64,000 nucleotides of DNA. It comes from Mobula birostris. Its lineage: Eukaryota. Of this stretch, positions 1 through 33,284 are shown in pieces. The notes under the pieces are model-generated. The model had not been told where the DNA came from. It did not search any database and was given only the letters and a program-made list of their open reading frames with translations. Each line of letters begins with the position of its first letter. The first letter of the stretch is position 1. The translations under genes were made by a program, and so were the position numbers. The stretch is from assembly GCF_030028105.1 (NCBI RefSeq), contig NC_092389.1:13937180-14001179 (forward strand), read 5' to 3'.

Positions 1-257
1 AATGGTTGAAACTGCAGTGAGCAACAGTTCTGAATTGTTTTACTGTTTATTTCTCGCCAACTATCAGTGATAAAAGTCACTGTTTTGAGCTCAAAATACA
101 TGCAACTGATGCTATTTTAAAAACTGTTTGCTCAAAGCATGGTGTAGCATCTAATGGCCACACAACTGCACATGACTGATACTTATTAGAACCTGGCAAC
201 ACACATCAAAGTTGCTGGTGAACGCAGCAGGCCAGGCAGCATCTCTTGGTAGAGGTA

Positions 258-295
258 CAGTCGACGTTTCAGGCCGAGACCCTTCGTCAGGACTA
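258..295 (-). ncRNA. Minimal type I hammerhead ribozyme motif in a Penelope-like pseudo-LTR fragment (about 197-358)
   Basis: The minus strand reads tagtc-CTGACGA-agggtctcggcct-GAAA-cg-TC-gactg: intact core, stem I, stem II and a palindromic ACGT stem III. Confidence 0.7.
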
Positions 296-768
296 ACTGA
301 AGGAAGAGTGAGTAAGAGATTTGAAAGTTGGAGGGGGAGGGGGAGATCCAAAATGATGATCCCAGGTACCCTGTCATTTGAAGATTTTTCATGGGGACAA
401 TTTGTTCTAATTTGTTCTGTATTGCATTTCATGAGCAAGTCCAAACAAAACAGTAAATATTATTTTCTCTTTGGACACCTGCAAGGACCCAGGCCAATAT
501 ACAATTAGGGCTGGAGTTCACTGGTCAATTTCAGGTGACATGAGTGCACCTGATATTTACTGATAGGCGTCAATGTGTTCTGTCAGTTGATTCTAGCAAG
601 AAGCTATGAAGCTGTTGATACTGTGCAAGAATTGTATACACTTGGGTATGTTGTATACTATAAAGGAGATAGAATCTATAAATGTGGGAGGTGAATATAT
701 TAGTGGACAATATTTTGTAAATCACAAGCATATCTGGGCATCACTTATTAATAGACGTGTTGTGGCAG

Positions 769-2238
769 GTCAGAATATATGCCAGCAAGAGACTGATTGA
801 CATGTTTGTTCTGGAGATTCTGCTGAAGACTTTGGCAAATAAAGGAAGAGCATTCTCTGAAGAGGTTGAGTTGGACAGGCTGTCAGACAGTAAGTTGTGT
901 TCTTCTTATCATCACACACAGTAGAGCATTTGTGATTACAGCCAGCAATGCATTGACAGTGCAGAATATCGGGTTTTCCTAAGTTTCAACCCACATGGTG
1001 AGTCTGTTATAACATGCTGCCAAAGGTTTTCCAACAAAGGAGGAGGAGGATGCAAGAGTTCATGAAATTCCTTCTTTTCCTCTGGATTTTTGATGTTGCT
1101 GAGGACACTGCAGAATTCCAGGTCCAGCCCTTGTACAATAATGTGTGGAAAGATGGGATGTTATTGAAAGAAATGGAAAATTATCTATTTGTAAGTAACA
1201 TTTGATTTATGACTGTAGTAAAGCAAGAATTGAGAATTTCCTGCGTTACCACTGAAGCAGCTGATCAGGTGGATTATCCAGCAACTTGTATTGAGTGTTT
1301 CATTTGTTTTGTCATAAGCTCTTTGTGTGCTGGTTGATAACTGAGAAGTCACCTCATCCTTTTTTTTTAGGTTCAATGCTTGACATCCTTTTAGGCCAGT
1401 ACCTCAACATAGGCCAATACAGTTGTGCAGCCATTGACAATGTGGCACTGCGGGATTACCATTTGAAGGCTTTTACAGATGTGGTGAGTGTATATTTTCC
1501 ACAACTAGTCCTCAATATATCCTTTTGGGATTTTATACCGTCACCCCTCCTGCAAAGCCATTGCTTATTTAAATACTTCTGTTAGTTCTTTTATAATTGT
1601 CAGGGCAGGGGATTTCAAGAAACAATTTCTGGTTCAAGCATCCCCTATCGGCAACAAGCTGTCTTCAAATACTCCTAGAACAGATACAACCCAAGTTAGG
1701 AGGAACAGAATAAAATTCCTCTGTTCTTTTCTCCATCGGTATGCTTCAACTCCTTTTCCAATACACCGTAAACTACTGATTCTGTCTTGGTTCCTAACAA
1801 TTACACATTGTCATTTTGGGCTGGCTAAGGGACTTTGCTTATGCATACAAATTAATGAATGTTGTGCAGCACCAATAAAGACAAGGAGACAGGAATCACA
1901 TTAGAATCATGTCGTGTTACCTGCTGATAATACATAGTTGTAATGGAGTAGTGAAGCAATTTCAGTTCCTCCCGTCTGACATTTCTCACTCTTTTTACTG
2001 GAAAAGTTCTTAAGAATTCTTGGGGTCTGAGGAGAATGAGGAAGCTATGATGTAGTGGAGCTTGTCACCCTGCAGTGAGGTTGCCAGTCCTTTGAATTAA
2101 TGGGGACTCCTGTCTGTTTGCCTTGAACAGGCACTGGATGTGATTCTGACGGAAATGGGTGAACATATGGATGAGGACATGGCTGATCTTTTCCAGTATG
2201 AAAGACAAATGGAAGAAGCAGACTCTAATGTAGAGTAA
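769..2238 (+). CDS. 3' coding exons of an unidentified multi-exon gene: join(769..889,1371..1483,2131..2238), ...VRIYASKRLIDMFVLEILLKTLANKGRAFSEEVELDRLSDSSMLDILLGQYLNIGQYSCAAIDNVALRDYHLKAFTDVALDVILTEMGEHMDEDMADLFQYERQMEEADSNVE*
   Basis: Three exons with AG/GT sites (ggcag|G, A|gtaagt; ttttag|G, G|gtgagt; gaacag|G). Phases are compatible (0,1,0) and give one open frame ending in TAA at 2236-2238. AATAAA lies at 2506-2511. The product is not recognised and the upstream exons were not identified. Confidence 0.75.
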
Positions 2239-3504
2239 TGAAATTAGTGCCTTGGGCTGATGATGTTGTATTCATTCTAACTGTGGTTGCTTATATTCCA
2301 ATTTGCTGTACCAAAAGAAGAGAAACGTGTTTACCATTGTATCATGTAACCTTAAACATATTAAGGAACTTTGTAAATTCTATTTCTTATTTTGAAATGA
2401 CAATCTTACATGAACAGTAGCTATTAAGTTGGCCAGAGCACAGGAACACTGTCCTGCTCTTTGAACACTTTGGTTTGATCTAAAGTCCCTATATAAAAGA
2501 TTGCCAATAAAGTGATAATCATTCCTTAAATGGACATTCATCTTTATTTATGGAAGAGTCATTTAACAAAGCATTTTCTCACTTCAGAAGTTTCTTGGGA
2601 AATTGTCTTGCACTGAAGGCCCTCACAATGAGGTATTCACAAGGATATAAATGTCTAGCACCATTCCTTCTCCACAGGCAGAAAATTTCCATTCCACCAC
2701 AGTTATAGACTTTAAAAATGGCTGTCCTCATTGTTACGTTTAGTAATTGTGTCTTCTATTTTGAGAAATTTGATGCACAGTTTATTGATATTGTTAAATA
2801 ATCATGTTTCAAATGTTTTTTTAAATGGAATAAGCAATAACTGATGCTCCAATTTAATGCAAGTCTGAAGTTCAATTTGTTCAAAAAGTTTATTTATTCA
2901 ACAGCAGATACTCGGAAATGAGCAACTATGAAGGAAGACGTAACACTAACTTTTTTAATGGTGGGTGGGAGGAAATTGTGATGGTTTCTGAATTTTTGGT
3001 GGGTAATGGCCAATAACAAGGTGCCTATCACTAAGTTAAAAATAGTTGCTACAGGTGGATTTGGGAGTTAAGAAAATATAGTCATCTCGACCCAAACTAC
3101 CCTATCTGTCACTTTAGGTAATGCCTTTGGTTCAGTGCTGACACTCTGAGTGAGCCAAAAGTATCATGGATTAAATTCTTGCTTCAGAAATTCAAGCACG
3201 AAATATAGGCTAACTGTAATTCATTAGTGATTATACAGTAAATAGAGGACCAATTTCCAGGCCTGATTTCAGTATATTAAAAATTATGTTCCACTTTGGT
3301 TTTATATAAACAATATTACACAAGAAATTTGCTAGAAAGGTGCTAGTAAGACAAGACTTCATTTATCCTGAGAGAGTAGATTAATTGTGGTTATCATTAG
3401 AGAAGGTGTTTGAAGAAATGAAGAAAAGAAAACTAATGCAGTGAAATATTATTGGTTTAAAGAGCCTGATAATATGGTTGAAGGAAATTTAATATTAATT
3501 TGAA

Positions 3505-4290
3505 GGAGCATAATTAGTCCACCCGGCCTATCAAGTCTGCTCCTGCATTCAATCATGGCTGATACTTTTTTCATCCCTATTTCCCATTTTCCTCATAAGG
3601 CTTAACCTCCTTCCCAGTCAAAAACTTATCAATCTCCACCTTAAATGCACCTAATGCCTTGACCTCCACAGCCCTCTGACGTAATGAATTCCACAGAGTC
3701 ACCATTCTCTGGTTGAAGAAATTTCTCCTCATCTCAGTTTTAAAGAGATGTCCCTTTATTCTGAGGCTATACATTGGATCCTAGACTCTCCTACGAATGG
3801 AAACCTGAGTTTCCATGTCCACTTTCTCCAGGTCTTTCAGTATCTGATAGGTTTCAATTGATAAATCCTCTCATCCTTCTGAACTCCAAGTACAGGTCCA
3901 GAGACACCGAACATTCCCCATAGATTAAGCCTTTCAATTCTTGTGAGTCTGCTCTGGACTCCCTCCAGTGCCAGCACAACTTCCCTTTGATACAGGGCTC
4001 AAAGTTGCTCACAATGTGGCAAATGTAGTCTGACCATGCCTTATAAAACCTCAGCAGTATACCCTTGATTTTATGTTCTAGCCCTCTTGAAATGAATACT
4101 AATATTTCATTTGCCTTCTTTACTACTGAAAAACACCCACAAAATGCTGGAGGAACTCAGCATGCCAGGCTGCATCTATGGAGTGGAGTAAACTGTTGAC
4201 ATTTTGGGTCAGGACCCTTCATTAGGTCTAACTCAACCTGCAAGTTAACCTGAAGGAAATCCTCAACTGGGACTCCCAAGACCCCTTGCA
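3505..4290 (-). mobile_element. CR1 LINE 3' fragment with a nested Penelope-derived piece (about 4130-4230)
   Basis: HSLRIKG..FKTEMRRNFF.QRMV.LWNSL-type C-terminal CR1 ORF2 motif on the minus strand. Confidence 0.75.
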
Positions 4291-6129
4291 CTTCGCGTAA
4301 TAAAATGATCGAATGAAACATGAAAAGGGAAATATACAAAGCGATCAATAGTGTTATTCCTAAACACTTTATTATTTTCCATAAGTATATTTGTTTCTTG
4401 TTATTTTAAAAGTTTAAAAAAATACAAGTCAAATGCGTTTATAAGTGTTATTAAGTGAAACTCCTATAATTTTTCAGTTGCTAAAAGGATACCATTTATC
4501 TGAGGCCTCGTGGGCACCACAGTTAACTTTTTTGTTACAGTAGCATAACAGCACGACACCAGTACAACTCAAGTGTGTTCCAGAGTGTGGAGTTCAATTC
4601 CAGTGCCGTCTGTAAGGAGTTTGTATGTGAATCACGTGAGTTTCCTCCCAACAGTCCCAAGATGTACTGGTTAGTAGGTTAGTTGGTCATTGTAACTTGT
4701 CCTGCAATTAGGCTAGTGTTAAATAGGTGGGTGGCTGAGCAGTGCAGTTGTTGGGCAGAAGGGCCTGTTCCATGCTGTATCTCTAAATAAATATAAAATA
4801 ATTAGTGATCTCTAAACTTGGTTATATTTCACAACTATTCTGTAAGATATACATATTTGTCCAAATGCTGGATAAGGGAAGAATCACTACATTTGAATGA
4901 CATCCACATTCAAAAAGCAAGTTTACCGTCTGAAAGGTTCCCAGTACCAGTGAAACTCCAGTACACATCACTGCATTTACTCCTTGGCTGACTTCCTCCT
5001 TACCCAGGAGAACTTGGACCATTCCATTCTTTGTGAATTGACATTACATGGCAGCAAGAAAGATCTTGTTTCAAAAGGGCCCAAAGAATTTCCATTTGGA
5101 GGAAGTGCTGAACCCTGAACATCCGCTCGGACTGTGGATTAAATTCCATCTTTGTAATTGGTGCACAGTTTGGAAGTTGTCCCAAAATGTTACTAAACAT
5201 CAACTGAACATAGATTTACATTTTTATTTTAATTATTAGCCAAAACCAAAATTTAAGGGCTGAAAGTAACATATTGATATGTCCAGTCCAAGCATTGCAC
5301 AACTTATCCTCAAAAGGTAGACAGCAATAGCTATCGCAACAATTAATCATTAAGATCATTATAGCATAGTTTAACGCTTCTGCAGTTTAAAGTTTTGAAA
5401 TTCATATTTTTTCATATTTCTTTATGATGTGTGAGGAGCTAGTCATCTCCTCAAGTCTATGCCAGATCTCAGATCATTCCTGTCAGTTACAACCCTGACT
5501 ATTTCCTTCTACTTATTTTTCCACCACCTCCCCTCTCCTCCAATGTCCCTCCACCCACTGAAATTAGGGACAGTATATACAGCTGCTAATTAAACTACCA
5601 GCATGGCTTTGGAATGTAGAAGGAAACTGGAGCATCCAGGAGAAACCCATGTGGTGGCAAGGAAAATAAGATCATAAGACATTGGAGCAGAATTAGGCCA
5701 TTTGGTCCACCAAGTCTACTCTGCTATTTGATCAAGTCTGGTTTCAGAGTTCAAAGTTTAAAGTAAATTTATTGGCAAAGTATGTATATGTCACTATATA
5801 AAATCTTGAGATTAATTTTTTTGCAGGCAATGTCAGTAAGTACAAAAAAAACAGTAGTATCAATGAAAGACCACACCCAACAGGGCAGACAACAACCACA
5901 GTGAAAAAAACTGTGCAAGTACAAACAACGGAGGAAAAATAAATAAATAATCAATAAATATCGAGAACATGAGATGAAGAGCCCTTGAAAGTGAGTCCTT
6001 AGATTATGGGAACAGTTCAGTGATGGGGTGAGTAGGGGTGAGTAAAGTTGGGTAATGTTATCCCCTCTGGTTCAAGAGCCTAATAGCTGATGGGTAATAA
6101 CTGTTCTTGAACCTGGTGGTACATGTCCT

Positions 6130-8600
6130 GAGGGTTATTATCCCTCTCAACCCCTTTGACGCCCTTGCTAATTGAGAACTTATCAACCTCCGTTTTAACT
6201 ATAACCAATGACTTGGCATCCACAGCAGTCTGTGTCATTGAATTCCACAGACTTACCAGCTTTGGCTAAAGAAATTCTGTCATACCTTTACAAAATAATG
6301 CCCTTCTACTCTGAGGCTGTGCCTTCTGGCCCTAGACTCCCCCACTATTGGAAACATCTTCTTAATATCCACTCTGTCTAGGCCTTTCAATATTTGATAA
6401 GTTTCAGTGAGATTCTCCCCCATTCCCCCAGGCCCTGAGCCATCAAATGCTCCTCATACTTTAACCTTTTCAATCCCAGGATCATTCTTGTGAATGTCCT
6501 CTGGACTCTCTCCAATGCTAGCACATCCTTTCTTAGATAAGGGGCCCAAAACTGCTCACAATACTCTGAGTGTAGGCTGATCAATGCCTTATAAAGCCTC
6601 AGTATTACATCTTGCCTTTATATTTTAGTTATCTTGAAATGAATGTTAACATTGTATTTTTCCTTCCTTACCAGCAACTGAACCTGCAAGTTAACCTTCC
6701 GTGAAACTTGCATGAGGATTTCCAAGACCCTTTTCACCTCTGATTTCAGAACTTGCTCCTGGTTTAAAAAATAGTGTACCCCTTTATCCCTTCTACCAAA
6801 GTGCATGACCATTCACTTCCCTACACTATATTCCATCTGTCAACTTTTTACCTATTCTCCCAAATCTGTTCAGGTCCTTTTGCAGACTTCCTGCTTCCTC
6901 AACACTACTGCCTCTCCACCTGTCTTTGTATCGTCTGCAAACTTGACCACAAAGCCACCAACTTTCATTGAAATCATTGTTATACACTTAATGGCCACTT
7001 TATGAGGTACACCTGCTTGTTAATGCAAATATCTAATCAATAAATCACATGGCAGCAACTCGATGCATAAAAGCATGCGGACATGGTCTAGCAGTTCAGT
7101 TGTCATTCAGACCAAACATAAGAAGAAATGTGGTCTAAGTGATTTTGACTGTGGTGTCAGACAGGGTGTTTTGAGTATCTCAGAAACTGCTGATCTCTGG
7201 GATTTTCATGCACAACAGTCTCGAGAGTTTAAAGAGAATGGAGTGAAAATTTTAAGAAAAAACACATCCAGTGAGCAGTAGTGCTATGGGTGAAAATGCC
7301 TTGTTAATGAGAGAGGTCAGAGGAGAATGACGAGACTGATTCAAGCTGACAAGAAGGTGACAGTAACTCAAATAACCACGTGTTACAACAGTGGTATGCA
7401 GAAGAGCATCACTGAATGCACAACATGTCAAACCTTGAAGTGGATGGGCTACAACAGCAGAAGACCATGGATATACACTAAGGGGGTACCTAATAAAGTG
7501 GCACTGAGTGCATGATGTAAAAAGAAGTGGTTCTAACACCAACTCCTGCAGATTACCACTAGTCACTGGTAACCAACCAGAGAAAGCTCCTCTTATTCCC
7601 ACTCTTTACCTCCTGCCAGTCAGCCAATCTTCAATCCATACTAGTATCTTTTCTGTAATACCATGGGTTCTTCTTGTGTTTAGCAGCACCATGTGCCATA
7701 CTTTGTCAAAGGCCTTCTGAAAGTCTAGGTAAACAACACCCACTGACTTTGTTTATCCTGCCTGTTATTTCTTCAAAAAATTCCAACAGATTTGTCAGGC
7801 AAGATTTCTTCTTAAAGACTTAGGACTATTTTATGATGTGCCTCCAAGTGCTCCAAAACCTCATCCTTAATAATGGACTCTAACATCTTCCCAACCATTG
7901 AGGTCAGGTGAACTGGCCTATAATTTCCTGTCTTTTGCCTCCCTCCTTTCCTAAAGAGTGGAGTGACATTTGCAATTTTCCAGTCCTCCAGAACTATTCT
8001 GGAATCTAGTGATTCTTGAAAGATCATTACTGGTGCCTCTACAATCCCTTCAGCAACCTCTTTCAGAACCCAGGGTGTAGTCCATCTGGTCCAGGTGACT
8101 TATCTACCGTCAGTCTTTTCAGTTTCCCAAGCAACTTCTCCCTAGTAATAGCAACTGCACTCCCTTCTGCACCCCAACAGTTTTGAGTTTCTGGCATACT
8201 GCTAATATCTTCTGCAGTGAAGACTGGCACAAAATAGTTAAGTTTGTCTGCTATTTCTTTGCCCCACCCCCTCCCCATTGCTACCTCTCCAGCATAATTT
8301 TCCAGTGGTCTGAAATCCACTCTCATCTCTATTTCACTCTTTATATATCTAAAAATTCTTTTGGTATCCTCTTTTATGTTATTACTATCATTACCTTCAT
8401 ATTTCACCTTTTCTCGCATTGTTTATTTTAGTTGCCTTCTGTTTTTTAAAAACATCCTAGTCCTCTTAGCTTCCCACTAATTTTTGCTATATTATATGCC
8501 CTCTCTTTTGCTTTTATGCTGTTTTTGTCTCATACTCCCTTTAGAATGCTTCGTCCTAGGGATGAATCAGTCCTGCATCTTCTGAATTGCTCCCAGAAAA
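6130..8600 (-). mobile_element. Degenerate CR1 LINE ORF2 (RT), interrupted by a Tc1-like element
   Basis: Motifs KSPGPDGLHP, DWKIANVTPLFRKG..GNYRPV.LTS, VTSG..Q..VL.PLLF and EYCEQFWAPYLRKD in fragmented frames. Confidence 0.85.
6985..7510 (+). mobile_element. Non-autonomous Tc1/mariner DNA transposon nested in CR1
   Basis: Imperfect TIRs cacttaatggccactttatgaggtac / gtacctaataaagtggcactgagtg, preceded by TA. The interior encodes RLIQADKKVTVTQITTCYN...LKWMGYNSRRP, a Tc1 transposase N-terminal fragment. Confidence 0.75.
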
Positions 8601-8774
8601 CATGTAAACTCCACAGAGAGAGGACTGAAGAATGGGATGAAATCTGAATCCTACAGCACCATCTCTAACTACAAGACCATTATGTTGCCCATACAAATAC
8701 AAAAGCTGTAACATTTTCATACTATTTTTATTTTGAGTAAATCATACGTCTCACAGAAAATCACACTTTTATTG

Positions 8775-10104
8775 TTAATTATTTCTGCTTGTGATCTCCA
8801 GGATTCTTTGAGTAAGGTCTTGATGTTTTTGTTTTATATATTCAGGTAGCTGCCCAAGATGAGAAGAAATCCATTCTCTGAAAAATAAAAGTCAAAATTA
8901 TTATTGCAATATACATGGGACTGCAGGGATGTATCTGTTATATATGGTCTTGGGAATATTTTGTTGGGAACATAAGATGGAGTTTTACTGTAAATTTGTA
9001 ACTTTTCCTGTAATTTCCTTGGATGTATTCAAAGGAACTGTGAAGAGGAAGTTCCCCTTTGTATAACCTATTAGTTACTTGCTCAGAGCAGAATTACAGC
9101 ACCATAGAGTGACATATAAATTAAAAAATATCTTTATAGCATCCAAAGCTTCAGATGCAGCTTTTATATTAACCTAAATTAAAATCAAAATTTTGTTTTT
9201 ATTTAATAAATATATTTGAATAACATAAAGGTTTGGTGATTACCTCCCACTTTGAACCACAGAACTGCTTGCCACATTGTCTAGAAGAGAGGATGCAGAC
9301 TCTGCAATTCTTCTTGCAAAACTTAGAAGTTGATGAGGTTCAGCTGTGGCACTGACTTCTTCCACAGGGGCAGCTTCATATGCTGTAAAACAGAGTTAGG
9401 AAAATACAGAGATTAAAACAGTGTCCAACAAAGGTAATGTTTATGTATGTTAAAGTATGAAAGCATGCAAATTTAGTTAGGACACTCTATAAGAATTCTA
9501 ACTCCATTCAATCAAAATTTTATCTCACCCAATGTATTAATTGTAATAAAGGGGCTGATTTTAACAAGAGTGGGAATTTAGATTGTGAGGGTATTGATCT
9601 GGTCCCAAAATACTATCATTTGGCTGTGACTCAAATCAAGCCCCAATTTAGAGTAGAAACCTTGTCTACTTCAGAGTATATGAAGATATTAGTTTGGGCT
9701 AGAGCAAGCAATTTCTTACTGGTAAATAACATTTAACTAATTTAAACCCCAATACATATTATATTTTCTATTGATAATGTTGTTAATGGAAATTAAGGAT
9801 ATCTGATAGAAGCGCAAACTAACTTCAGCTTTAACTGCTCCAAGAAGTTTGATGGGGCAATATTGAGGAAGTCTTACAACTAAACTGAGCTATGTAGAAC
9901 TGATAGTACTTAAGGCTGATTTGGGTGGAAAAGGTGACATTGTTTCTTTCCCCGGTGTTTAGGGCAGTTCCATTTGAGACAAAGTGACTTCCTGAGAAAA
10001 TAGTTTCATTTGTTACCATATTCTCAGTTAGGAATATAAAGAGTCATTCACGTACCAGCCAGTGTTGCAACTAGAAGAACCAGAACTGTGACTTGAATCT
10101 TCAT
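8775..10104 (-). CDS. Small exchangeable apolipoprotein, apoC-III/apoC-I-like, 96 aa: complement(join(8775..8877,9244..9382,10056..10104)) MKIQVTVLVLLVATLAAYEAAPVEEVSATAEPHQLLSFARRIAESASSLLDNVASSSVVQSGREWISSHLGQLPEYIKQKHQDLTQRILEITSRNN
   Basis: Canonical apolipoprotein architecture: a 49-nt signal-peptide exon ending phase 1, a 139-nt exon ending phase 2 within an Arg codon, and a last exon starting EW. All splice sites are GT/AG. AATAAA at 8768-8773 follows the stop. LLSF..A...L..V.SS.V.Q..R|.W matches the human apoC-III exon 3/4 pattern. Confidence 0.85.
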
Positions 10105-10950
10105 TTTGATTTTTCTTTCCTTTCTGTCCTTTGGAGTGAATTAGAGAATTTGCAGTTATTAACAGTATGCAGTTGAGCTTCTGGGTAACCTCTCGTGGGC
10201 TATTTAATTTTGGACTCATTGACTAGTTAGTGTTTACATTCTATTCCATTCTCTCATTTTCTTCACCTTCAAAGTAAAATATCAAACCTCCTCCCCCGTG
10301 CACAAAAACATTGCACAAACAGCAACAATAAAAAATGAGTGAAAAACACAGAACATAAAACACAAAATCAAAAGGTATAGTTCAGTATTGTTCAGCTCAG
10401 TGTTCATTATCTGCAGTCTGCCCTGATTCAAAAATCTCCCAAAAGTAGTAACAAAAAAGAGCAACCATAGTTAGAACTAGAGCTAGAACTAGAACACATC
10501 ATAAAAAATGAATTAGATATTAGGATGATAGGAAACAACCCTGAAATTGTCCTTACTGCTTTTTTTCTAGAAAAAAAATTAAATTTTCAGTTGTGCAACA
10601 TTGAAAATAAGATATATATTTGAATTGCTAGGCAGTGGTCTCTTCTGAATATGTGAGAGCAAAAGAAGAATGGGTAGCACTTCCCGGCTTTTTAATTCTC
10701 CTTCTCATTTCAATCTCACCTGTATTGTTCCAGGGTGGTTCAAGCTAAACTCAAGGAACACCACCACCACTTCTAATTAGAGCCTTCTGAATTTAACACT
10801 GATTTTTTTTTAAAAATCCAGATAATGAATATTTCCATGATTTTATTCCGTATTTCTAGTGCCCATTCCACATTTGTTTGGTAACTTTGAATAATTATTC
10901 TGCTTTTACATATCTTTTAGACTTTTGTTAGCTTACTCTATTACCTCTTT

Positions 10951-11631
10951 AATACAAAATACTCTGCAGATGCTGGGGTCAAAGCAATACTCATAACATG
11001 CTCCCGGTGCGGCCTCCTCTGCATCGGTGAAACCCAACGCAGATTGAGGGACCGCTTCGTCGAGCACCTCCGTTCCGTCCGCCAAAACAGACAGGATCTC
11101 CTGGTTGCCACCCACTTCAACTCTGCTTCACATTCCCATTCGGATATGTCCACACATGGCCTCCTCTACTGCCAAGATGAGGCTAAACTCAGGTTGGAGG
11201 AGCAACACCTCATATACCGTCTAGGTAGTCTCCAGCCCCTTGGTATGAACATTGAATTCTCCAACTTCTGGTAATTCCCTCCCCCTCCTGTCCCCCATCC
11301 CAGTTTCACTCTGACCCTCCCCCAGCTGCCAACTACCTCCCTCATGGTTCCACCTCCTTCTACTACCCATTGTGCTTTCCCCTATTCCTTCTTTACCTTT
11401 CCTGCCTATCCCCTCCCTGCTTCCCTTCCCCCACCCCTTTATCTTTCTCCTTACTGGTTTTCACCTGGAACCTACCAGCCTTCTCCTTCCCACCCTCCCC
11501 CCACCTTCTTTATAGGTCCTCTGCCCCTTCCCCCTACAGTCCTGACGAAGAGTTCCAGCCCGAAACGTTGACTGATCGTTTCCACGGATGCTGCCCGACC
11601 TGCTGAGTTCCTCCAGCGTGTTGTGAGTGTT
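10951..11631 (+). mobile_element. 5'-truncated Penelope-like retroelement (GIY-YIG C-terminus plus pLTR) with a 14-bp target-site duplication
   Basis: IGETQRRLRDRFVEHL...VATHFN...EEQHLIYRLGSLQPLGMNIEF. TSD tctattacctcttt at 10937-10950 and 11632-11645. A short inverted pLTR piece sits at the 5' end. Confidence 0.85.
11537..11574 (+). ncRNA. Minimal hammerhead ribozyme motif (Penelope pLTR)
   Basis: cagtc-CTGACGA-agagttccagccc-GAAA-cg-TT-gactg; stem II is partly mismatched. Confidence 0.6.
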
Positions 11632-13431
11632 TCTATTACCTCTTTTGTGTTTGTAACCTCTCCTGCTTTCTACCTTGGCAGAGACATTAGCTTTTTTCCT
11701 CTCTTCCATTTCTTCTTTCTCTGCATCGTAAAGTGGTTTATTGCTATTATTCCTAGTTCCACTGAAAGGTCTTTGATCTTATACAGTATGTTAACTCTGT
11801 TCCTCTTTCCATGGATGCTGCCTGAGCTGGTGTTTTGAGCACATTTTGATTTTACAACATCCAAAAATCTCATAGCATTTATGTGCCTTGACAATGTCAA
11901 GCATTTAAAATATGTTTTTCCTGAATAAAAACCAAGTGAATGGGAATTGTATTCCCAAAACTATTATCACATATTCCAGGCTGGCAGATATCCATACTTC
12001 TATTGCAGCAAAAAGTGCAATTGTCTTGTCCAAGTTTCATCAGGAGCAACTTGAGTTGACTTTTCTTTTGTAGGATGTCTTTGCTGAAGTCTACCACCTA
12101 CTGGACATTTTTGCAACAGCCAATAGTTTGCTATGCACTGAGGCAAATGCAAGATACTACCCCAGCTCCCAGTGAGAGAATTTCCTTTATTTCAATCTCC
12201 TTCACAGGTACAATAGTATAATTTAAGAAGCACTTGGATAGGTACATGGAGGGGAGAGGCCTGGAGGGATATAGGCTGAACACAGGAAATTGGGGCAACA
12301 CACGCAAAATGCTGGTGGAACTCAGCAGGCCAGGCAGCATCTATGGAAAAGAGTACAGTTGATGTTTCGGGATGGACCCCTTCGACAACCCTTCTCTTGT
12401 TTGTGATAGGAAATTGGGACTAGCTGGGTGGGCATCATGTGGGCAACATGGACTTGTTGGGCCAGAGGGCTGGTATCTGTGCTGTATTTCTCTGTGACTC
12501 TGTAGGCAGTTACTCAGGGTTGAGAAAAACTCATGAGGCACACAGGTTTCCAAGGATTGTAGGCAACCCCACATTGTGGGTTGTCAGTATATACATTCTG
12601 TTTTGACTGCAAGTCCCCTGAGTACACAATCAACTCTCTCCCTCCTCTCTACTCCCTCACCAAGACCTTTAATAAAACATTAGCTAATTTTGGTAGTACT
12701 AGTCTGATTAGCAAAAAAAAACTTTCTTTGCAGGTTTTAGCCACAATGCATTACTGTTGCAAGAAGGCAGGTGACATACCTGCTGTGGTAGTTGAAGAAG
12801 GGTCTCAGACCGAAGCGGCGACTGTTTATTTATTTTCATAGATTCTGCCCGACCTGCTGAGTTCCTCCAGCATTTGTATGTGTTGCTTTCCTCCTCTTTC
12901 TCTGTGTTTCTATCTACTCCCACTTGCACTTTGTAAGTACAGTAGCACAATTCTATGATGAAAAGCTAAATCTGAAGGAAGGAGCTTGCCATTGCCTTGG
13001 CTAGATTGCAATAAGTAAACAGTGATTGAAGTTTCTGTTGCTTATCATGTGACAGTGTTTACTTTGAATTACTGCAGGGTTGTCTTGATCTCCCCATGTC
13101 TAAACCACTACCATGTGTAAGTAACATAAAAAGTATAGATGCTGGAAATCTGAAATAATATGCTTTTATACAGCCTTTTTCTGTCAAGTCCCTTGGATAG
13201 TCCCATGCTTGTGAAGGGGCTATATATGTGGAACATCTTGCTTTTATGTGGTCAGTGGATATTCTTACTCAATGACCATGCTGTGGGGAAAAAAATCAGA
13301 AGCGGGAATTCTGGCTGATTGCTCGCTTCCACAAGCTGGCCTGAGGTCAGTTACAGTGTCAGCACTGGCTAATCAGCTAGGATCAGCTCATTGAAATTTC
13401 CTCAGAAAATACTAGAATTGTTTCTCTAAAG

Positions 13432-13511
13432 CAGGGTTTCCCAACCCTTTTTATGCCATGGACCCCTACCATTAACCGAAAGGTCCATGGACCCCAGGTT
13501 GGGAACTCCTG
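13432..13511. mobile_element. 80-bp hAT/Charlie-type MITE
   Basis: TIRs cagggtttcccaacc / ggttgggaactcctg. Flanks ctctaaag / gtctagaa resemble the NTCTAGAN target. Confidence 0.7.
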
Positions 13512-15189
13512 GTCTAGAATGCTGGGGTTTAGTTGTGATTAGATTTAATTTAATTCAAACAAAAGTAGTAAATTTCATTGACTGTAAAATAATTATAAAG
13601 TTACAACAGGGAAGTGGGACCCGAGAGCTAGAGACAGCATGCATCCAACCATTACAGTCAAAATAGTTAAAGAGAGCAAGATGGTAAATTAATATGTAGG
13701 TAAATGTTTGCCATGGCATAATTTATTATACTTTTGCCTTGAGTCAGAGATTGCCCACAGAAGTTTAGGCTGATTGTCGAACTGGTATACTGAGGGATTG
13801 CTGCACAGCTGTATTGTAAGAATTTAAAATGAGAAGCCCTTTTTCCTCAGTAAAAGATCCATGGAACTACTTTAGAAAATGTGCAGGCCTGTTATCACTA
13901 GAGATTTGATCAACATCACTAAATCTGATTGCATAACTATCATGCCACAAATCGTAATGCCATACTGAAGAGGACTATTGTGATTCCTACAACAGGAACC
14001 ATACATTTCAAGTACTTTATTGGCAGCATCCATCACTAAGGACCCTCACCATCTGGATCATGCTCTCTTCTCATTATGACCAACCAAGGGGAGGTACAGG
14101 AGCTTGAAGACACACACTCAATGATTCACAAACAGCGTCTCCCCCTCCACCATGAGATTCTTGAATGATCCATAAATCCATGACACTACCTCATTACTCC
14201 TTTTTTTGCACTATTGATTTATCTTGTAATTTTATATCTTTGCACTACTGCTGTCACAAAACAATAATTTTTAAGTCTTATAATTCAGTGATAATAAATC
14301 TGATTCTATTAGCAGAAGAGCAATGCTTAAAATTTGTCTCCTGTGAAATTTTCGACTAAGTTATTGTGAATAATGACCAAGAAAAGAATCAGCTTTTACT
14401 AATGCTGAAAGCTCAAAAGGAATGCTTATTAAAGGGCCAATCGCTGTAAACCTGCTGTATAATATTATGCACACTGCTCACATTGAAGATTGACTCTGCC
14501 ATATTCCTTCAAACATTTTGCTGCAACCAAAACTGACTTAAATGGTCAAGGTATGACACTGCTTTTCAGAGGGAAATTATTTGCTTCAGGACTAAATCCA
14601 GTGTTCGCAGCCTGAGTTTCTGTGGCCAAAACCCTCAGCACCAGCTCCTTCTCGAGCTTTTCAAAATCCTTGACCAGTAAACCTATTCACAATAGTCAGA
14701 AATCTCTGGTGAGTCTCTAGTAGCTACAGGATTGCTGTTGAATGTTGTGTGCTCTTGGGCTGGCCAATAAGCTCTCAACTGCATGTCTTAAATGCAGGCA
14801 TCATCAAGAAGTTCGCTAAACATTGGGGCAATATATGAGAGAGTTGAAGAACACTTCTTCAACTGGTGTTAGCAAATATCACCTTTTAGGAGCTATCGAA
14901 AATAGTTTTGAGGAGCCAATTTTTAAAACCCAGAGGATAGTGTAGACTTTCTATCTGAACATGTCTCCCTGTTCTCTCTGCTGCTCTCACTCCCCTCTTC
15001 CTTTTAATATATATTCCTAAATGCACCTAAGTTTCCAATTATAAAGAATAGCCAGAAACAATTCCTGTAATTTACACTTTTCTTCTCTATTTTTAAGTGA
15101 ACATTTGGAATAAAAATGTTGAGCCATGCCTTGTGGTTCAAATAAAAATTGTCAGCTTGGCCCATAAAGGAGAAAGAGATAGCTCTTAC

Positions 15190-15249
15190 CTGAAACTGTG
15201 TGAGGTTCAGCTTCTGTGAAGCAAGTTGTCGAGTATATATGTATTTATA
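15190..15249 (-). promoter_or_regulatory. TATA box (TATAAATA, 15242-15249) and short non-coding exon 1 (about 15190-15220), probably of the small apolipoprotein gene
   Basis: The minus strand reads TATAAATA...ttcag|gtaaga. Apo genes typically have a short non-coding first exon. A candidate acceptor lies just upstream of the ATG exon (~10.13 kb). Confidence 0.65.
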
Positions 15250-22600: not shown

Positions 22601-22792
22601 TTTCATGTCTCATAACTGTGATGTTTTTGGAAATTTAGCAGAATGTGAAAGAGCCAGGGATGAAGTACAAACAGGAAATGCATTTGGAAAGTAAGGGAAA
22701 GAAATGAACTGACAAAAGAGAATAAGCTGGGAGAAAAAGAAGAGGGAATGAGCTGGAATATTAAGAATACAGAATATGATTTGGATATCATT

Positions 22793-25700
22793 GGGGGGGT
22801 TGACTTACTTGGGACAAGCTGCGGCAGCCGGATCTCTGGCACTGAGTCTGCCGTGCAGAAGGGAGGGTGGAAGAAGAGGAGAGCGGTAGTGATAGGGGAC
22901 TCGATAGTTAGAGGTACAGATAGGAGGTTCTGTGGTCGTGACAGAGAATCCAGGATGGTTTGTTGCCTCCCAGGTGCCAGGGTCAGGGACGTCTCTGATC
23001 GCGTGCACAGCATTCTGAAGTGGGAGGGTGATCAGCCAGATGTCATGGTACACATCGGTACCATTGACGCAGGAAGAAAGAGTGAGGAGGTCCTGAAGAG
23101 TGAGTGTAGAGAGCTTGGTAGGAAGTTAAAAAGCAGGACCTCGAGGGTGGTAATCTCAGGATTGCTACCTGTGCCACGTGCCAGTGAGAGTAAGAATAGG
23201 ATGCTCGGGCGGATGAACAAGTGGCTGAGGAACTGGTGTAGGGGCAGGGTTTCAGATTTCAGGATCATTGGGGCCTCTTCTGGGGCAGGTGGGAAGAGAG
23301 ACAGGTTACACCTGAACCACAAGGGGAGCAATATCCTTGCAGGGAGGTTTGTTAGTGCTGTTGGGGAGGGTTTAAACTAGATTTGCAGGGGGATGGGAAC
23401 CAGAGTGCCAGAGCAGATAGTGGAGTGGGGGTGAAAATAAATGATGTTAAAAGTTCATGGAAAGTCACAAATAGAAGGGTTGTGTGTGGTGGTAATAATC
23501 TTCTGAGGTGTGTCTATTTCTATGCAAGGAGTATTGTGGGGAAGGCTGACAAGCTGAGGGCATGGACTGACACATTGAATTATGACATTATAGCCATTAG
23601 TGAAACTTGGCTACAGGAGGGGCAGGACTGGCAGCTTAATTTTCCAGGATTCCGATGTTTCAGACGTGATAGAGGCAGAGGGATGAAGGGTGGGGGGGAG
23701 GTGGCATTGCTAGTCAGGGAAAATGTTACGGCAGTGCTCAGACAGGACAGATTAGAGGGCTTGTCTACTGAGGCCATATGGGTGGAGCTGAGAAACAGGA
23801 AAGGTATGACCACATTAATGGGGTTGTATTATAGACTACCCAATAGTCAGCGAGAATTGGAGGAGCAAATCTGCAGAGAGATAGCAGACAACTGCAGGAA
23901 ACGTAAAGTTGTGATAGTAGGGGATTTTATTTTTCCACATATTGATTGGGACTCCCATACTGTTAAAGGTCTAGGTGGGTTAGAGTTTGTAAAATGTGTT
24001 CAGGAAAGTTTCCTAAATCAATATATTGTCACAAAGGCAGGGGCATTGGGAGCAAGGGTGGACCCAAATGTAAGACACATCTTGTGAGGTTAATTAGATT
24101 TAGTTTATTGTTCAATACCAGGAGAGCAAGGCAGGAGCAGGAGTAGCGAACTGGACAAGGACTCAGGACTACTACTAGGCTGGGACTAGGGGTCTGGGCT
24201 AGGACTCGGAATTGGATCCCAGAACTAGAGGAGACATGAAGAGGCTAGGGTATGGACTCCGAGCCAGAGACTGGGCAAGGACCCAGTACCTGGGTCTTGC
24301 CTCTGGCTCGGACCCCAGAACCAGGCAAAGACATGACATGGGCTAGGGAGAGGAGGAACATGGGAACACAGAGCCTCGGTCTCAGGAGAGCAGGTACATG
24401 TAACCATGAACACATACACAGAACACAAGCTGGGACCCCTCCTTGGGTACAGGACATAGGGCCGGGACTCATGATCCCCCGCGATGCAATGGCAAGATGG
24501 CCTGACTTACCCCAGGGAGACGAGGACAAGACAAGACAAGACATGACCCCCCCCCCCCGCAGAGCAATGGCAAGACGGCCTGACTTACCCCACGGAGGCG
24601 AGGACAAGACAAACACCAAAGAACAACACAGTTCCCATCTAGCTCCGGCGATAGAACTAGACCGAGACAGGGGGGTAGGACAGGAATCACAGACCGCCAG
24701 GGCCAGGACTTGACCAGGTACTCAGATGCTGCCAGGGCCAGGACTTGACTTGGTACTCGGATGCCGCCAGGGCCAGGACTTGGACTTAGACGTGGTACTT
24801 GGATGCCGCCAGGGTCAGGACTTGGACGTGGTACTTGGATGCCACTGGAGCCAGGACGTGGTACTTGGAACCTCCGGGTGGTGGCGAGCTCTAGATTCGG
24901 CCCAGGAACAGTAGACAGTGGCTCCTGACTCTCTCCGGCGGGTTAACTGACGGACCCACCTTGATGAGGAAACTTTGCAGGCTTGCTTCGGTGAGGTAAC
25001 TGGACAGGGTTGCTCCGGTGAGGAAAGGCGAATTACCAGCACTCGCTTCGGCAGAGACTAGGCTTGCTCCGGCCAGATGACATCGGCACACTGTACCTTG
25101 GTGACTTTGCAAACGCTCTCGCGCCGAACGGCTGAAAGCCGGAGACTATAAACTACCGGTTCAGCCGAGCGTTAATTGCCTCTAATTACCAAAGCCGAGG
25201 GACATGGGAAAACAGGGAATCAATGGTCCAGATCGTAACATAAACAAGGTAAATTTAAAGGGACCCCGATCCGGACCATGACATATATAGAGGTACCAAC
25301 TAGAGAGGATGCAATATTAGATCTCTTATCAGGAAACAAGTTAGGACAGGTGACAGAAGAGTGTGTAGGGGAACACTTTGGTTCCAGTGATCATAACACC
25401 ATTAGTTTCAACTTGATCATGGATAAAGATAGATTTGGTCCTCGGGTTGAGTTTCTAAACTGGAAAAAGCCAAATCTGAAGAAATGAGAAAGGATCTAAA
25501 AAGCGTGGATTGGGATAGGTTGTTCTCTGGCAAGGACGTGATTGGTAAGTGGAAGGCCTTCAAAGGAGAACTTTTGAGAGTGCAGAGTTTGTATGTTCCT
25601 GTCAGGATTAAAGGCAAAGTGAATAAGAATAAGGAACCTTGGTTCTCAAGGGATATTGGAACTCTGATAAAGAAGAAGAGGGAGTTGTATGACATGTGTA

Positions 25701-27640
25701 GGAAACAGGGAGCAAATAAGGTGCTTGAAGAGTATAAAAAGTGCAAAAAATACTTAAGAAAGAAATCAGGAGGGCTAAAAGAAGACATGAGGTTGCTTTG
25801 GCAATCAAGGTGAAGGATAATCTAAGGAGCTTCTACAGGTATATTAGGAGCAGAAGGATAGTAAGGGATAAAATTGGTCCTCTTGAAGATCAGAGTGGTC
25901 AGCTATGTATGGAACCAAAAGAAATGGGGGAGATCTTAAATGGTTTTTTTGCGTCTGTATTTACTAAGGAAACTGGCATGGAGTCTATGGAAATAAGGCA
26001 AACAAGTAGTGAGGTCATGGAATCTATACAGATTGAAGAGGAGGAGGTGCTTGCTATCTTGAGGCAAATCAGAGTAGATAAATCCCCAGGACCCAACAGG
26101 GTATTCCCTTGGACCCTGAAGGAGACTAGTATTGAAACTGCAGGGGCCCTGGTAGATATATTTAAAATGTTGGTATTTACGGGTGAGGTGCTGGAGGATT
26201 GGAGGATAGCTCATGTTGTTCCGTTGTTTAAAAAGGGCTCTAAAAGTAATCCGGGAAATTATAGTTTGACGTTGGTAGTAGGTAAATTATTGGAAGGAGT
26301 ACTAAGAGATAGGATCTACAAGTATTTGGATAGACAGGGACTTATTAGGGAGAGTCAAAATAGCTTTGTGTGTGGCAGGTCATGTTTAACAAATCTATTA
26401 GAGTTTTTTGAGGAGGTTACCAGGGAAGTGGATGAAGGGAAGGCAGTGGATGTTGTCTACGTGGACTTCAGTAAGGCCTTTGACAAGGTCCTGCATAGGA
26501 GGTTAGTTAGGAAGATTCAGTTGCTAGGTATACATGGAGAGGTAGTAAATTGGATTAGACATTGGCTCAATGGAAGAAGCCAGAAAGTGGTAGTGGAGGA
26601 TTGTTTTTCTGAGTGGAGGCCTGTGACTAGTGGTGTGCCACAGGGATCACTGCTGGGTCCATTGTTATTTGTTATCTATATCAATGATCTGGATGATAAT
26701 GTGGTAAACTGGATCAGCAAGTTTGCTGATGATACAAAGATTGGAGGTGTAGTAGACAGTGAGAAAGGTTTTCAAAGCTTGCAGAGCGATTTGGACCAGC
26801 TGGAAAAATAGGCTGAAAAATGGTACATGGAGTTTAATACAGACAAGTGTGAGGTATTGCACTTTGGAAGGACAAACCAAGGTAGAACATACAGGGTTAA
26901 TGGTAAGGCATTGAGGAGTGCAGTAGAACAGAGGGATCTGGAAATACAGATACAAAATTCCCTAAAAGTGGCGTCACAGGTAGATAGGGTCGTAAAGAGA
27001 GCTTTTGGTACATTGGCCTTTATAAATCAAAATATTGAGTATAAGAGTTGGAATGTTATGGTGAGGTTGTATAAGGCATTGGTGAGGCTGAATCTGGAGT
27101 ATTGTGTTCAGTTTTGGTCACCAAATTACAGGAAGGATATTAATAAGGTTGAAAGAGTGCAGAGAAGGTTTACAAGGATATTGCCGGGACTTGAGAAACT
27201 GAGTTACAGAGAAAGGTTGAATAGGTTAGGACTTTATTCCCTGGAGCGTAGAAGAATGAGGGGAGATTTGATAGAAGTATATAAAATTATGATGGGTATA
27301 GATAGAGTGAATGCAAGCAGGCTTTTTCCACTGAGGCAAGGGGAGAAAAAAACCAGAGGACATGGGTTAAGGGTGAGGGGGGAAAAGTTTAAAGGGAACA
27401 TTCGGGGGGGGCTTCTTCACACAGAGAGTGGTGGGAGTGTGGAATGAACTGCCAGATGAGGTGGTAAATGCAGGTTCTTTTTTAACATTTAAGAAAAACT
27501 TGGACAGGTACATGGATGAGAGGTGTATGGAGGGATATGGTCCGTGTGCAGGTCAGTGGGACGAGGCAGAAAAATGGTTCAGCACAGCCAAGAAGGGCCA
27601 AAAGGCCTGTTTCTGTGCTGTAGTGTTCTATGGTTCTATG
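22793..27640 (+). mobile_element. Near full-length CR1 LINE: ORF1 SGNH esterase, ORF2 endonuclease plus RT, disrupted
   Basis: ORF1 VVIGDSIVRG/HIGT/DRLHLN. EN motifs AISETWL, VGDF and SDH. RT motifs DFSKAFD, GVPQGS.LGPLLF and KFADD. Frameshifts, an in-frame TAG at 26809, and a (ttctatgg)n tail. Confidence 0.95.
24027..25283 (-). mobile_element. Long solo LTR (Gypsy-type) nested in the CR1 endonuclease domain
   Basis: TGTCA...TGACA termini and a 5-bp TSD tatat (24022-24026, 25284-25288). Removing it restores CR1 QYIEVPTR. TATA-like and AATAAA signals on the minus strand; internal ~36-bp tandem repeats. Confidence 0.85.
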
Positions 27641-27859
27641 ATTAGGGAGCAAGGAGTAAACTGGATGTTGAGAATGACTGAGAAACAAGGCAGGAAATGA
27701 TGTGGAAGGAGGGAATGAAGTGGAAATAAGGAATGAATTGGAATTGGGAGCAAGCAATGAGCTGTCAGAGTGGTAAAGGTAGGATTGAGAAATGTACACT
27801 GACAAAGGAATGAAAATGGGGAAATTTAAGGAGCAGGGAAGGTGAGATTTAGACTGAAA

Positions 27860-29670: not shown

Positions 29671-30185
29671 GTCATAGTCATAGTCATAGTCATACTTTAT
29701 TGATCCCGGGGGAAATTGGTTTTCGTTACAGTTGCACCATAAATAATAAATAGTAATAGAACCATAAACAGTTAAATAGTAATATGTAAATTATGCCAGG
29801 AAATAAGTCCAGGACCAGCCCATTGGCTCAGGGTGTCTGCTCCTCCAAGGGAGGAGTTGTAAAGTTTGATGGCCACAGGCAGGAATGACTTCCTATGACG
29901 CTCTGTGTTGCATCTTGGAGGAATGAGTCTCTGGCTGAATGTACTCCTGTGCCCACCCAGTACATTATGTAGTGGATGGGAGACATTGTCCAAGATGGCA
30001 TGCAACTTAGACAGCATCCTCTTTTCAGACACCACCGTCAGAGAGTCCTGTTCCATCCTCACAACATCACTGGCCTTATGAATGAGTTTGTTGATTCTGT
30101 TGGTGTCTGCTACCTTCAGCCTGCTGCCCCAGCACACAACAGCAAACATGGTAGCACTGGCCACCACAGACTCGTAGAACAACTC
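29671..30185 (-). mobile_element. Rex1/Babar-like LINE 3' end
   Basis: FYESVVAS..FAVVCWG...RINKLI.KA...RCNTERHRKSFLPVAIKLYN, with a (gtcata)n tail. Confidence 0.8.
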
Positions 30186-30640
30186 GTAGGTCTTGTCCTA
30201 AAAACTACAAATAACCCGTGAAATAGCCAGATTCAGTGCCAGGACTTCTGCTGCAGAAAAACTAAGAAGCTTCTAGAAAATACAGAATCAGTTATATTAC
30301 AATTACTAGAAAAAAAAATCACTGGACAGTTATACACACGGGTGATGATATAAAATACAGTAAGCATAGAAAAAGTTAAATTATGAGAATTATTGGCACT
30401 GTAATTCAATCGATCTGGAGATCCCTGTTTTGGACCTAGTACTGGTGATTATAATAGCAGATCAAGCTGGTGTGAGAGCCATCAGAGAACTGGGTAAGTG
30501 TAGTGTTCCCGTGCATTCACTGCCCACCGTCCTTGCAAGGGTCGCAGAGTTGGACGATATCGTTATGAAAAGCCTTGGCAAGTTGCCAAGTTGTGACAAG
30601 CTAGTAGAAATTGTAGCCACTGTGGATGGAATGAATGTTT

Positions 30641-32637: not shown

Positions 32638-33284
32638 TGGAATGAATGTTTAAGGATAAAGAAAGCACTCTTACTATCGGGACACTAGGGCCTGTCATCC
32701 ATGGAACTGAACCTGAGCAGGAAACAGTAGCTTCAGGGGAAAACATTGGAGAAGTAATAGTTGTGCTGTTAGTTGTAAAATAAACATTGGTTAAGACAAC
32801 AGTGACAAGCCTGCTCTTTGAGTGGTGCCACAGATTTTTACACCCATCTTCAAAGACAGATAGGGCCTCTGCCTAAAATTTCATTCAAAAACAGGCTCAC
32901 TAACTTAACTGCTCTTCCTCAGTATTCTACAGGAAACATTGTACTTGAATTTAGTACTGAGTTAGTGGAGAGAAAGAACTGAAACAAAGAGGGGTGGAGG
33001 TGAGGGGCTGTGCTGATCCTGAAGCCTGTGTCCTGAGTTCCTTTTACCCTGGCCACAAGCATGCAAGGAGCCGGCTGACGCTCTTTCCATCCATGCTGGG
33101 TTGAGCGTCATGCTAGGAACTTGGCCTTGAGTCCCCTTGCGATTAGACTCAGACCCTGCCCTGTCATGTTTTTTTGTTTCGTGATGTACAATACCACTCT
33201 TCTTTCAAAGAATTCACACACGTTGTCCACCATTTGGAAACGGAACAGAAGCAAGTCATTCTTGAACCAAAGAGACTGCCGATT

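Follow-up and report, generated by a model that had tools for sequence, protein, structure and literature searches.

A short gene on the minus strand of a 64,000-nucleotide stretch of the Mobula birostris genome (contig NC_092389.1, positions 13,937,180 to 14,001,179, hereafter the window) is real and is expressed in several related rays. This transcribed four-exon gene very probably encodes the 96-residue precursor of a small secreted exchangeable apolipoprotein, an apoC-type member of the apoA/C/E family located at the edge of an array of apoA-IV genes. Membership in the exchangeable apolipoproteins is well supported by the gene layout, the linkage and the character of the helices, and not by sequence statistics. 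The spliced protein was searched as separate exon peptides, namely, exon 3 (45 residues) and exon 4 (33 residues); the sequence has diverged past the reach of such exon-wise searches, and it may descend with apoC-I, apoC-II, apoC-III or apoA-II or with none of these.

Gene structure and transcripts

The gene is represented by a TATA box, a short non-coding exon and three coding exons, and all three introns are of the GT..AG type. Its parts, all on the minus strand, are as follows.

15249-15242, minus: putative TATA box TATAAATA, read in the sequence, about 26-33 nt 5' of the first transcribed letters seen
15190..15216, minus: exon 1, non-coding; the 3' end is fixed at 15190, the 5' end reaches at least 15216
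10129..15189, minus: intron 1, 5,061 nt, GT..AG, in the 5' untranslated region, with interspersed repeats
10056..10128, minus: exon 2; 24 nt of 5' untranslated region, then 16 signal-peptide codons MKIQVTVLVLLVATLA and base 1 of an Ala codon (phase 1)
9383..10055, minus: intron 2, 673 nt, GT..AG, phase 1
9244..9382, minus: exon 3, 139 nt; encodes the remainder of the signal peptide, then an acidic N-terminus followed by an amphipathic helix of 29 residues with the core QLLSFARRIAESASSLLD
8878..9243, minus: intron 3, 366 nt, GT..AG, phase 2
8750..8877, minus: exon 4; begins with the third base of an Arg codon, then 33 codons EWISSHLGQLPEYIKQKHQDLTQRILEITSRNN; the 3' end at about 8750 is approximate

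The donor of exon 1 is CAG/GTAAGA at 15190/15189, and the role of TATAAATA as a TATA box is judged by its position ahead of this exon. Exon 2 follows the acceptor ...CCAAAG/GACAG at 10129/10128 and ends in the donor CTG/GTACGT at 10056/10055; exon 3 is bounded by the acceptor TTTTACAG and the donor GAG/GTAATC, and exon 4 starts at 8877, directly after the acceptor TTTTTCAG. Exon 1 is free of ATG, as is exon 2 in its 5' part; the start codon is found at 10104-10102, with A at position -3. The stop codon TAA occupies 8777-8775, and a polyadenylation signal, AATAAA, is located at 8773-8768.

The coding pieces translate to 16 residues (MKIQVTVLVLLVATLA), 45 residues (YEAAPVEEVSATAEPHQLLSFARRIAESASSLLDNVASSSVVQSG) and 33 residues (EWISSHLGQLPEYIKQKHQDLTQRILEITSRNN), joined by the split codons G/CA for Ala and AG/A for Arg, which gives 16+1+45+1+33 = 96 codons. 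In exon 3 the proposed frame alone is open, with two stops in each of the other two frames. An earlier reading of this DNA, made from its letters alone (the sequence-only reading), had proposed the same three coding exons, spliced in phases 1 and 2 into a protein of 96 residues; the translation with its split codons was reproduced, and all coordinates of that reading were correct to the base. The gene had also been said to be absent from the track of open reading frames (ORFs), and indeed none of the 63 listed ORFs, of at least 90 residues, covers it.

Transcripts were sought in public sequencing runs with positions 8760-10300 as the query. Twelve runs were listed, nine of them containing part of the stretch; the share of sampled words was 0.68 in one run and 0.07-0.16 in the other eight, about what the exons alone would give. 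The runs, from organisms coded A-E, are available as Logan contigs, and four of the twelve (X1, X2, X3 and X7, one each of organisms A-D) were aligned on positions 8600-10300 at 90% likeness. The joint 9382/10056, which skips 673 nt, was found in all four runs (three contigs in X1, one in X2, one in X3 and seven in X7), and the joint 8877/9244, which skips 366 nt, in three of the four (two contigs in X1, five in X2, one in X3 and none in X7). Both skipped segments read CT..AC on the plus strand, that is, GT..AG on the strand of the gene. For instance, record 18 of X3 (198 letters) contains exon 3 with 50 letters of exon 4, and record 19 of the same run contains 21 letters of exon 3 with 75 of exon 2. 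Contigs of exon 2 are present in all four runs.

Exon 1 lies outside the aligned stretch, and its junction with exon 2 is read from overhangs of the exon-2 contigs. Past position 10130 these overhangs match, as reverse complement, the 3' end of exon 1, by eye, at 9 of 9 letters in X3 (15200-15192) and at 24 of 25 letters in X7 (15216-15192); the aligner extends to 10130 and not to 10128 because exon 1 and intron 1 both end in AG. The non-coding exon that had been proposed upstream is borne out by these overhangs. All three junctions suggested earlier for a check against RNA, 15190/~10.13 kb (through the overhangs), 10056/9382 and 9244/8877, are thus present in the contigs of the runs.

The contigs of X2 and X3 are confined to exons (8 and 7 of 30 bins, respectively). 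In X1, low-depth contigs pass through both introns 2 and 3, and in X7 one contig passes through most of intron 2. The summed word depth in X1 was 25-64 in intron and flank bins versus about 3,000-218,000 in exon bins, depth of this kind being a poor measure of expression. In X1-X3, depth is present in the bin 8714-8770 and absent from the bin 8657-8713, stopping just past AATAAA, which fits cleavage shortly past this signal and agrees with the polyadenylation signal proposed in the sequence-only reading.

A processed pseudogene or a DNA artefact was considered as the source of the joints and rejected, since intron-bearing contigs are of low depth only, exon-only contigs are far deeper, and three GT..AG introns are removed. 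Seven further rows of joints are shifted by 1-10 places, four of them near 9382/10056 (all in X2) and three near 8877/9244 (all in X7). In six of these rows, 1-10 other letters stand between the two sides, and for one this is not known; they are read as sequence variants at the junction and not as alternative splice sites.

Within intron 1, a motif of about 26-30 nt (CTGGAGGAACTCAGCAGGTCGGGCAG...) was found twice by eye, at about 12870-12845 and at 11617-11588 on the minus strand; it probably belongs to a family of interspersed repeats.

Predicted protein and membership in the apolipoprotein family

The precursor carries a hydrophobic N-terminal leader, MKIQVTVLVLLVATLA, from which secretion is predicted. 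The leader would be cut after Ala16 or Ala17, leaving a mature protein of 79-80 residues. The mature part contains two Lys and five Arg versus two Asp and eight Glu, with a net charge of about -3 and no Cys. The 18-residue window QLLSFARRIAESASSLLD of exon 3 has a hydrophobic moment of 0.60, reached by 2 of 2000 shuffles, and the mean hydrophobic moment of exon 4 was reached by 37-50 of 2000 shuffles. AlphaFold models of the isolated peptides contain a helix at residues 15-43 of 45 in exon 3 (mean pLDDT, the predicted local distance difference test, 85.4) and helices at residues 2-7 and 10-32 in exon 4, with a break at Gly-Gln before Leu-Pro (mean pLDDT 86.7).

The layout of the gene is that of its neighbours. 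In the apoA-IV-type gene at 52.2-54.4 kb, examined by eye, the signal-peptide exon ends in ...CTC ACA G/gt (phase 1) and is followed by a 41-codon exon at 53940-53814 and then by a phase-2 junction (AA/gt) into the long last exon. Intron phases 1 and 2 are therefore common to this gene and the small gene, and their middle exons comprise 41 and 45 codons. The four-exon layout with intron 1 in the 5' untranslated region, reportedly described by Li and co-workers in 1988, is said to be common to the genes of apoA-I, A-II, C-I, C-II, C-III and E. The attribution of this layout to the exchangeable apolipoproteins in the sequence-only reading accordingly stands, with intron 1 in the 5' untranslated region and phases 1 and 2 as in the apoA-IV-type gene of the window. 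In addition, three genes with the domain PF01442 are located in the same window. The window's apoA-IV-type genes share with the small gene the strand (in the case of the two canonical copies), both intron phases, the array and the size class of the middle exon, but their last exon has more than 300 codons versus 33, and the small gene is devoid of the 22-mer repeat domain.

As an exchangeable apolipoprotein, the protein would be made mainly in liver or gut. Its helices would lie flat on the phospholipid surface of plasma lipoproteins, the protein would exchange between particles and, like other small apolipoproteins, it would modulate the access of lipases and receptors to the lipoprotein particles.

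A number of points weigh against this assignment. Phase-1 introns near the signal-peptide end are common in genes for secreted proteins, and the layout is suggestive rather than proof. The cut of the signal peptide was placed by the -3/-1 rule of thumb, without a predictor, and single-sequence AlphaFold helices on peptides of 33-45 residues are weak evidence. The protein is known here from the genome and RNA-derived contigs alone, and the runs are labelled 'RNA? (a guess)', with no tissue stated. No sequence-based test assigns the protein to any family: in Pfam, neither exon peptide matched a family at E<=10, HMMER filters hiding most matches above about 0.1. In the Protein Data Bank (PDB), phmmer at E<=10 returned ten RAD51-type rows of chance level for exon 3, the best at E 1.1 and 13.4 bits, and exon 4 matched a single spike-mimic row (E 0.34), with no apolipoprotein chain for either; any likeness to a solved apolipoprotein chain would thus score below chance-level matches. 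The ESM Atlas gave nothing usable for exon 3 or exon 4. Smith-Waterman scores against the exon-3 equivalent and the last exon of apoA-IV were reached by 236 and 160 of 2000 shuffles and are not significant.

Other comparisons were likewise negative. Over the exon-3 equivalent and last exon of apoA-IV and the protein P0001 of a neighbouring gene, the full set of Smith-Waterman counts was 236, 160, 1257, 992 and 970 of 2000 shuffles, none above the shuffles. The search of exon 3 by phmmer against 1,835,955,588 representative proteins gave no match at E<=0.001, a 45-residue query detecting, by our estimate, only relatives above roughly 55-60% identity, and a word-based search with exon 3 gave no candidate among proteins of 25-79 residues. 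The gene is probably not annotated as protein-coding, because exon 3 has no match in a library that draws on NCBI proteomes, though a sister collection contains the neighbour protein of Mobula hypostoma. It is an example of a short multi-exon gene missed by ORF lists and, apparently, by protein catalogues.

Genomic neighbourhood and alternative assignments

The other features of the window that bear on the origin of the small gene are as follows.

41107-41241 and 43772-44275, plus: short apoA1/A4/E-type gene, mapped with P0001; PF01442 at E 1.3e-10, below the Pfam cut-off
52159-53112, minus: last exon of canonical apoA-IV type, one of two copies (PF01442 at E 1e-71 and 5.5e-72 for the pair)
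60945-61898, minus: last exon of canonical apoA-IV type, second copy of this pair
23383-24084, plus: endonuclease of a long interspersed nuclear element (LINE)
25741-26808, plus: LINE reverse transcriptase
30990-31988, minus: LINE zf-RVT

The ORF 43685-44275 on the plus strand is 97% identical to 'uncharacterized protein LOC134340773 [Mobula hypostoma]' (P0001, 225 residues) and 63% identical to 'apolipoprotein A-IV-like isoform X2 [Pristis pectinata]'. The former species is a batoid elasmobranch, and the origin of the DNA from a cartilaginous fish, assumed from the letters alone, is thereby confirmed. The first 12 residues of P0001 were left unmapped. Divergence of the short gene from P0001 is uneven, the middle exon being 86.7% identical (45 residues) and the last exon 97.0% (168 residues). 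The two canonical last exons share 312 of 317 residues (98.4%), which looks like the product of a recent tandem duplication or of gene conversion.

The sequence-only reading had placed the small gene head-to-head with an apoA-IV-like gene. This holds for the short apoA1/A4/E-type paralogue, whose start lies about 25-26 kb from that of the small gene, but not for the two canonical copies, which share the strand of the small gene, the latter being located downstream of both. Between the two genes of this head-to-head pair lie LINE remains, at 22748-27700 (plus) and 29772-32746 (minus), and the pair was probably once much closer together. No further apolipoprotein-type exons were found in the window by tblastn of these proteins, including positions 1-8700 downstream of the small gene, and tblastn with the three exon peptides found no second copy of the small gene in the window (next-best E 0.26-0.27).

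Among more specific assignments, it is unlikely that the small gene is the cartilaginous-fish orthologue of APOC3, divergent beside an apoA-IV-type gene and inhibiting lipoprotein lipase. Such orthology would agree with the head-to-head position relative to the short gene, with the acidic mature part of 79-80 residues and with the likeness of exon 3 to human apoC-III put forward in the sequence-only reading; in human apoC-III the mature part is likewise acidic, with about 79 residues, and the precursor is just under 100. Four exons, intron 1 in the 5' untranslated region, the phase-1 and phase-2 introns, size, acidity and divergent orientation to an apoA-IV-type gene are all shared with APOC3. 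The apoC-III assignment of the sequence-only reading was nevertheless not sustained by the exon-wise tests, weak as they are, in which neither a match to the Pfam family Apo-CIII nor an apoC-III chain of the PDB appeared at E<=10 and phmmer gave no similarity. The divergent partner is short, diverged and some 25-26 kb off, while the canonical apoA-IV copies point the same way as the small gene. In mammals APOC3 is tail-to-tail with APOA1; in the window no apoA-I-type exon was found in the 8.7 kb downstream, so that neither the mammalian order A1-C3-A4 nor a position between a tail-to-tail APOA1 and a head-to-head APOA4 is present there. In the sequence-only reading equally good parallels were reported to apoC-I and apoA-II; pointing to three families at once, those to C-III, C-I and A-II argue for family-wide resemblance, and together are what family-wide helix periodicity would give. 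Moreover, the origin of APOC3 is dated much later in the parts of PMC6854765 and PMC7431520 that deal with it.

Also improbable is orthology with another named small apolipoprotein, apoC-I, apoC-II, or apoA-II (fish Apo-14 kDa), downstream and co-oriented as APOC1 is after APOE. In mammals APOC1 follows APOE, and the position of the small gene on the same strand as, and downstream of, the two canonical apoA-IV copies recalls the order APOE-APOC1 as much as APOA4-APOC3. The R/EW junction and the register of the tail, pointed out in the sequence-only reading, also favour this group, and the intron phases are common to the whole family. Profile comparison with ApoC-I and ApoA-II, proposed earlier together with Apo-CIII, gave no Pfam match for these families on either exon. 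With APOC1 the ray gene shares a small secreted helical product, the gene layout and the location downstream of, and co-oriented with, long apolipoprotein genes, and Arg/Glu-Trp at its exon 3/4 junction has been likened to apoC-I. However, apoC-I is Lys-rich and basic, while the mature ray protein is acidic, with only two Lys, and about 20 residues longer. With apoA-II and teleost Apo-14 kDa the ray gene shares the size class, the gene layout and a C-terminal amphipathic helix preceded by a Pro, but the ray protein is devoid of Cys, and the tail motif is altered in the diverged version of X7.

A lineage-specific small apolipoprotein of elasmobranchs or batoids, derived from a duplicated and shortened gene of apoA-IV/A-I type and not orthologous to any tetrapod apoC, is a possible but doubtful origin. 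It would suit a dynamic array with two nearly identical last exons and an inverted, shortened 225-residue paralogue, the lack of a detectable relative of the small gene among 1.84 billion representatives, and a coding sequence that seems to change fast in X7. However, a recent origin from the neighbouring apoA-IV exons is excluded by the lack of significant similarity to them, and an old one is indistinguishable from orthology with these data. That the gene encodes a secreted helical peptide unrelated to apolipoproteins (for example, host-defence or hormone-like) and merely lies beside the array is very unlikely: although no family of any kind was matched and phase-1 introns in signal-peptide regions are common, both intron phases and the size of exon 3 match the neighbouring apolipoprotein gene, the position is inside the array, the long amphipathic helices have a Pro/Gly break, and there is no dibasic processing pattern around a conserved core.

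Evolutionary setting and sequence variation

Elasmobranchs store and transport liver lipid in very large amounts; a small apolipoprotein that is abundant is therefore likely to matter for their physiology. A survey with nine human proteins as BLASTP and tblastn queries, described in part of PMC6854765, dates the first apoC-I and apoC-II to teleosts and the first apoC-III to Sauria; such human-query searches, as far as they are set out there, would miss a gene like that of the ray. The family order given in a portion of PMC7431520 is LAL2/LAL1, then A1/A4/E, A2/C1/C2, C3/A5 and C4, and in the same portion cartilaginous fishes are not mentioned (no occurrence of the words searched). The excerpts of PMC4527288 and PMC5159437 contain no statement on fish APOC3. 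A literature search that covered few subscription journals and no supplements turned up no small apolipoprotein reported from sharks, rays or chimaeras.

Lamprey LAL2, according to the portion of PMC7431520 concerned, is a small serum apolipoprotein outside the bony vertebrates and a proposed ancestor of the APOA/C/E genes; the lamprey lal2 loci are described there as intronless versus the three introns of the ray gene. A small apolipoprotein in cartilaginous fishes is expected from the lamprey and teleost data, and the ray gene contradicts a published scheme of gains and losses, cartilaginous fishes being said to lack such small apolipoproteins. The arrangement of a small apolipoprotein gene next to a long one would thus be older than published schemes say. 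The ray gene is a concrete handle on the age of small apolipoproteins and on the rise of lipase-modulating ones. Were the orthology with APOC3, unlikely as it is, true, the apoC-III lineage, together with a predicted lipase-inhibiting small apolipoprotein in divergent arrangement with an apoA-IV-type gene, would date back at least to the last common ancestor of jawed vertebrates; in ray-finned fishes the lineage would then have been lost or overlooked.

Run X7 (organism D) contains a diverged version of the gene. In intron 2 it is about 92.7% identical to the window, with 44 of 604 letters different and five gaps. In its overhangs, read by eye, exon 3 starts with Tyr-Glu-Ala-Ala-Pro-Val-Glu-Gly-Asp, versus ...Glu-Glu-Val in the window, and past the exon 3/4 junction it reads Trp-Leu-Ser-Ser-Leu-Ile-Lys-Lys-Ile-Pro, versus Trp-Ile-Ser-Ser-His-Leu-Gly-Gln-Leu-Pro in the window. 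After Trp, six of nine codons and 10 of 25 letters are changed at equal length, and the motif behind the apoA-II register does not retain its 'GQL'. The tail reads Ile-Thr-His-Gly-Asn-Asn-Glu-Glu-Ser-stop, versus Ile-Thr-Ser-Arg-Asn-Asn-stop in the window. Whether the version of X7 is an orthologue, a paralogue or an allele, the reading frame is retained while residues change fast.

Minor differences between the runs were also noted by eye. The end of the coding sequence varies at 8772-8777: one contig of X1 has three extra letters directly after the stop codon, and X7 lacks the stop at this place, its frame continuing for three codons more. At position 8810, one contig of X3 (organism C) has C for G on the plus strand, replacing Gln23 by Glu in the exon 4 peptide.

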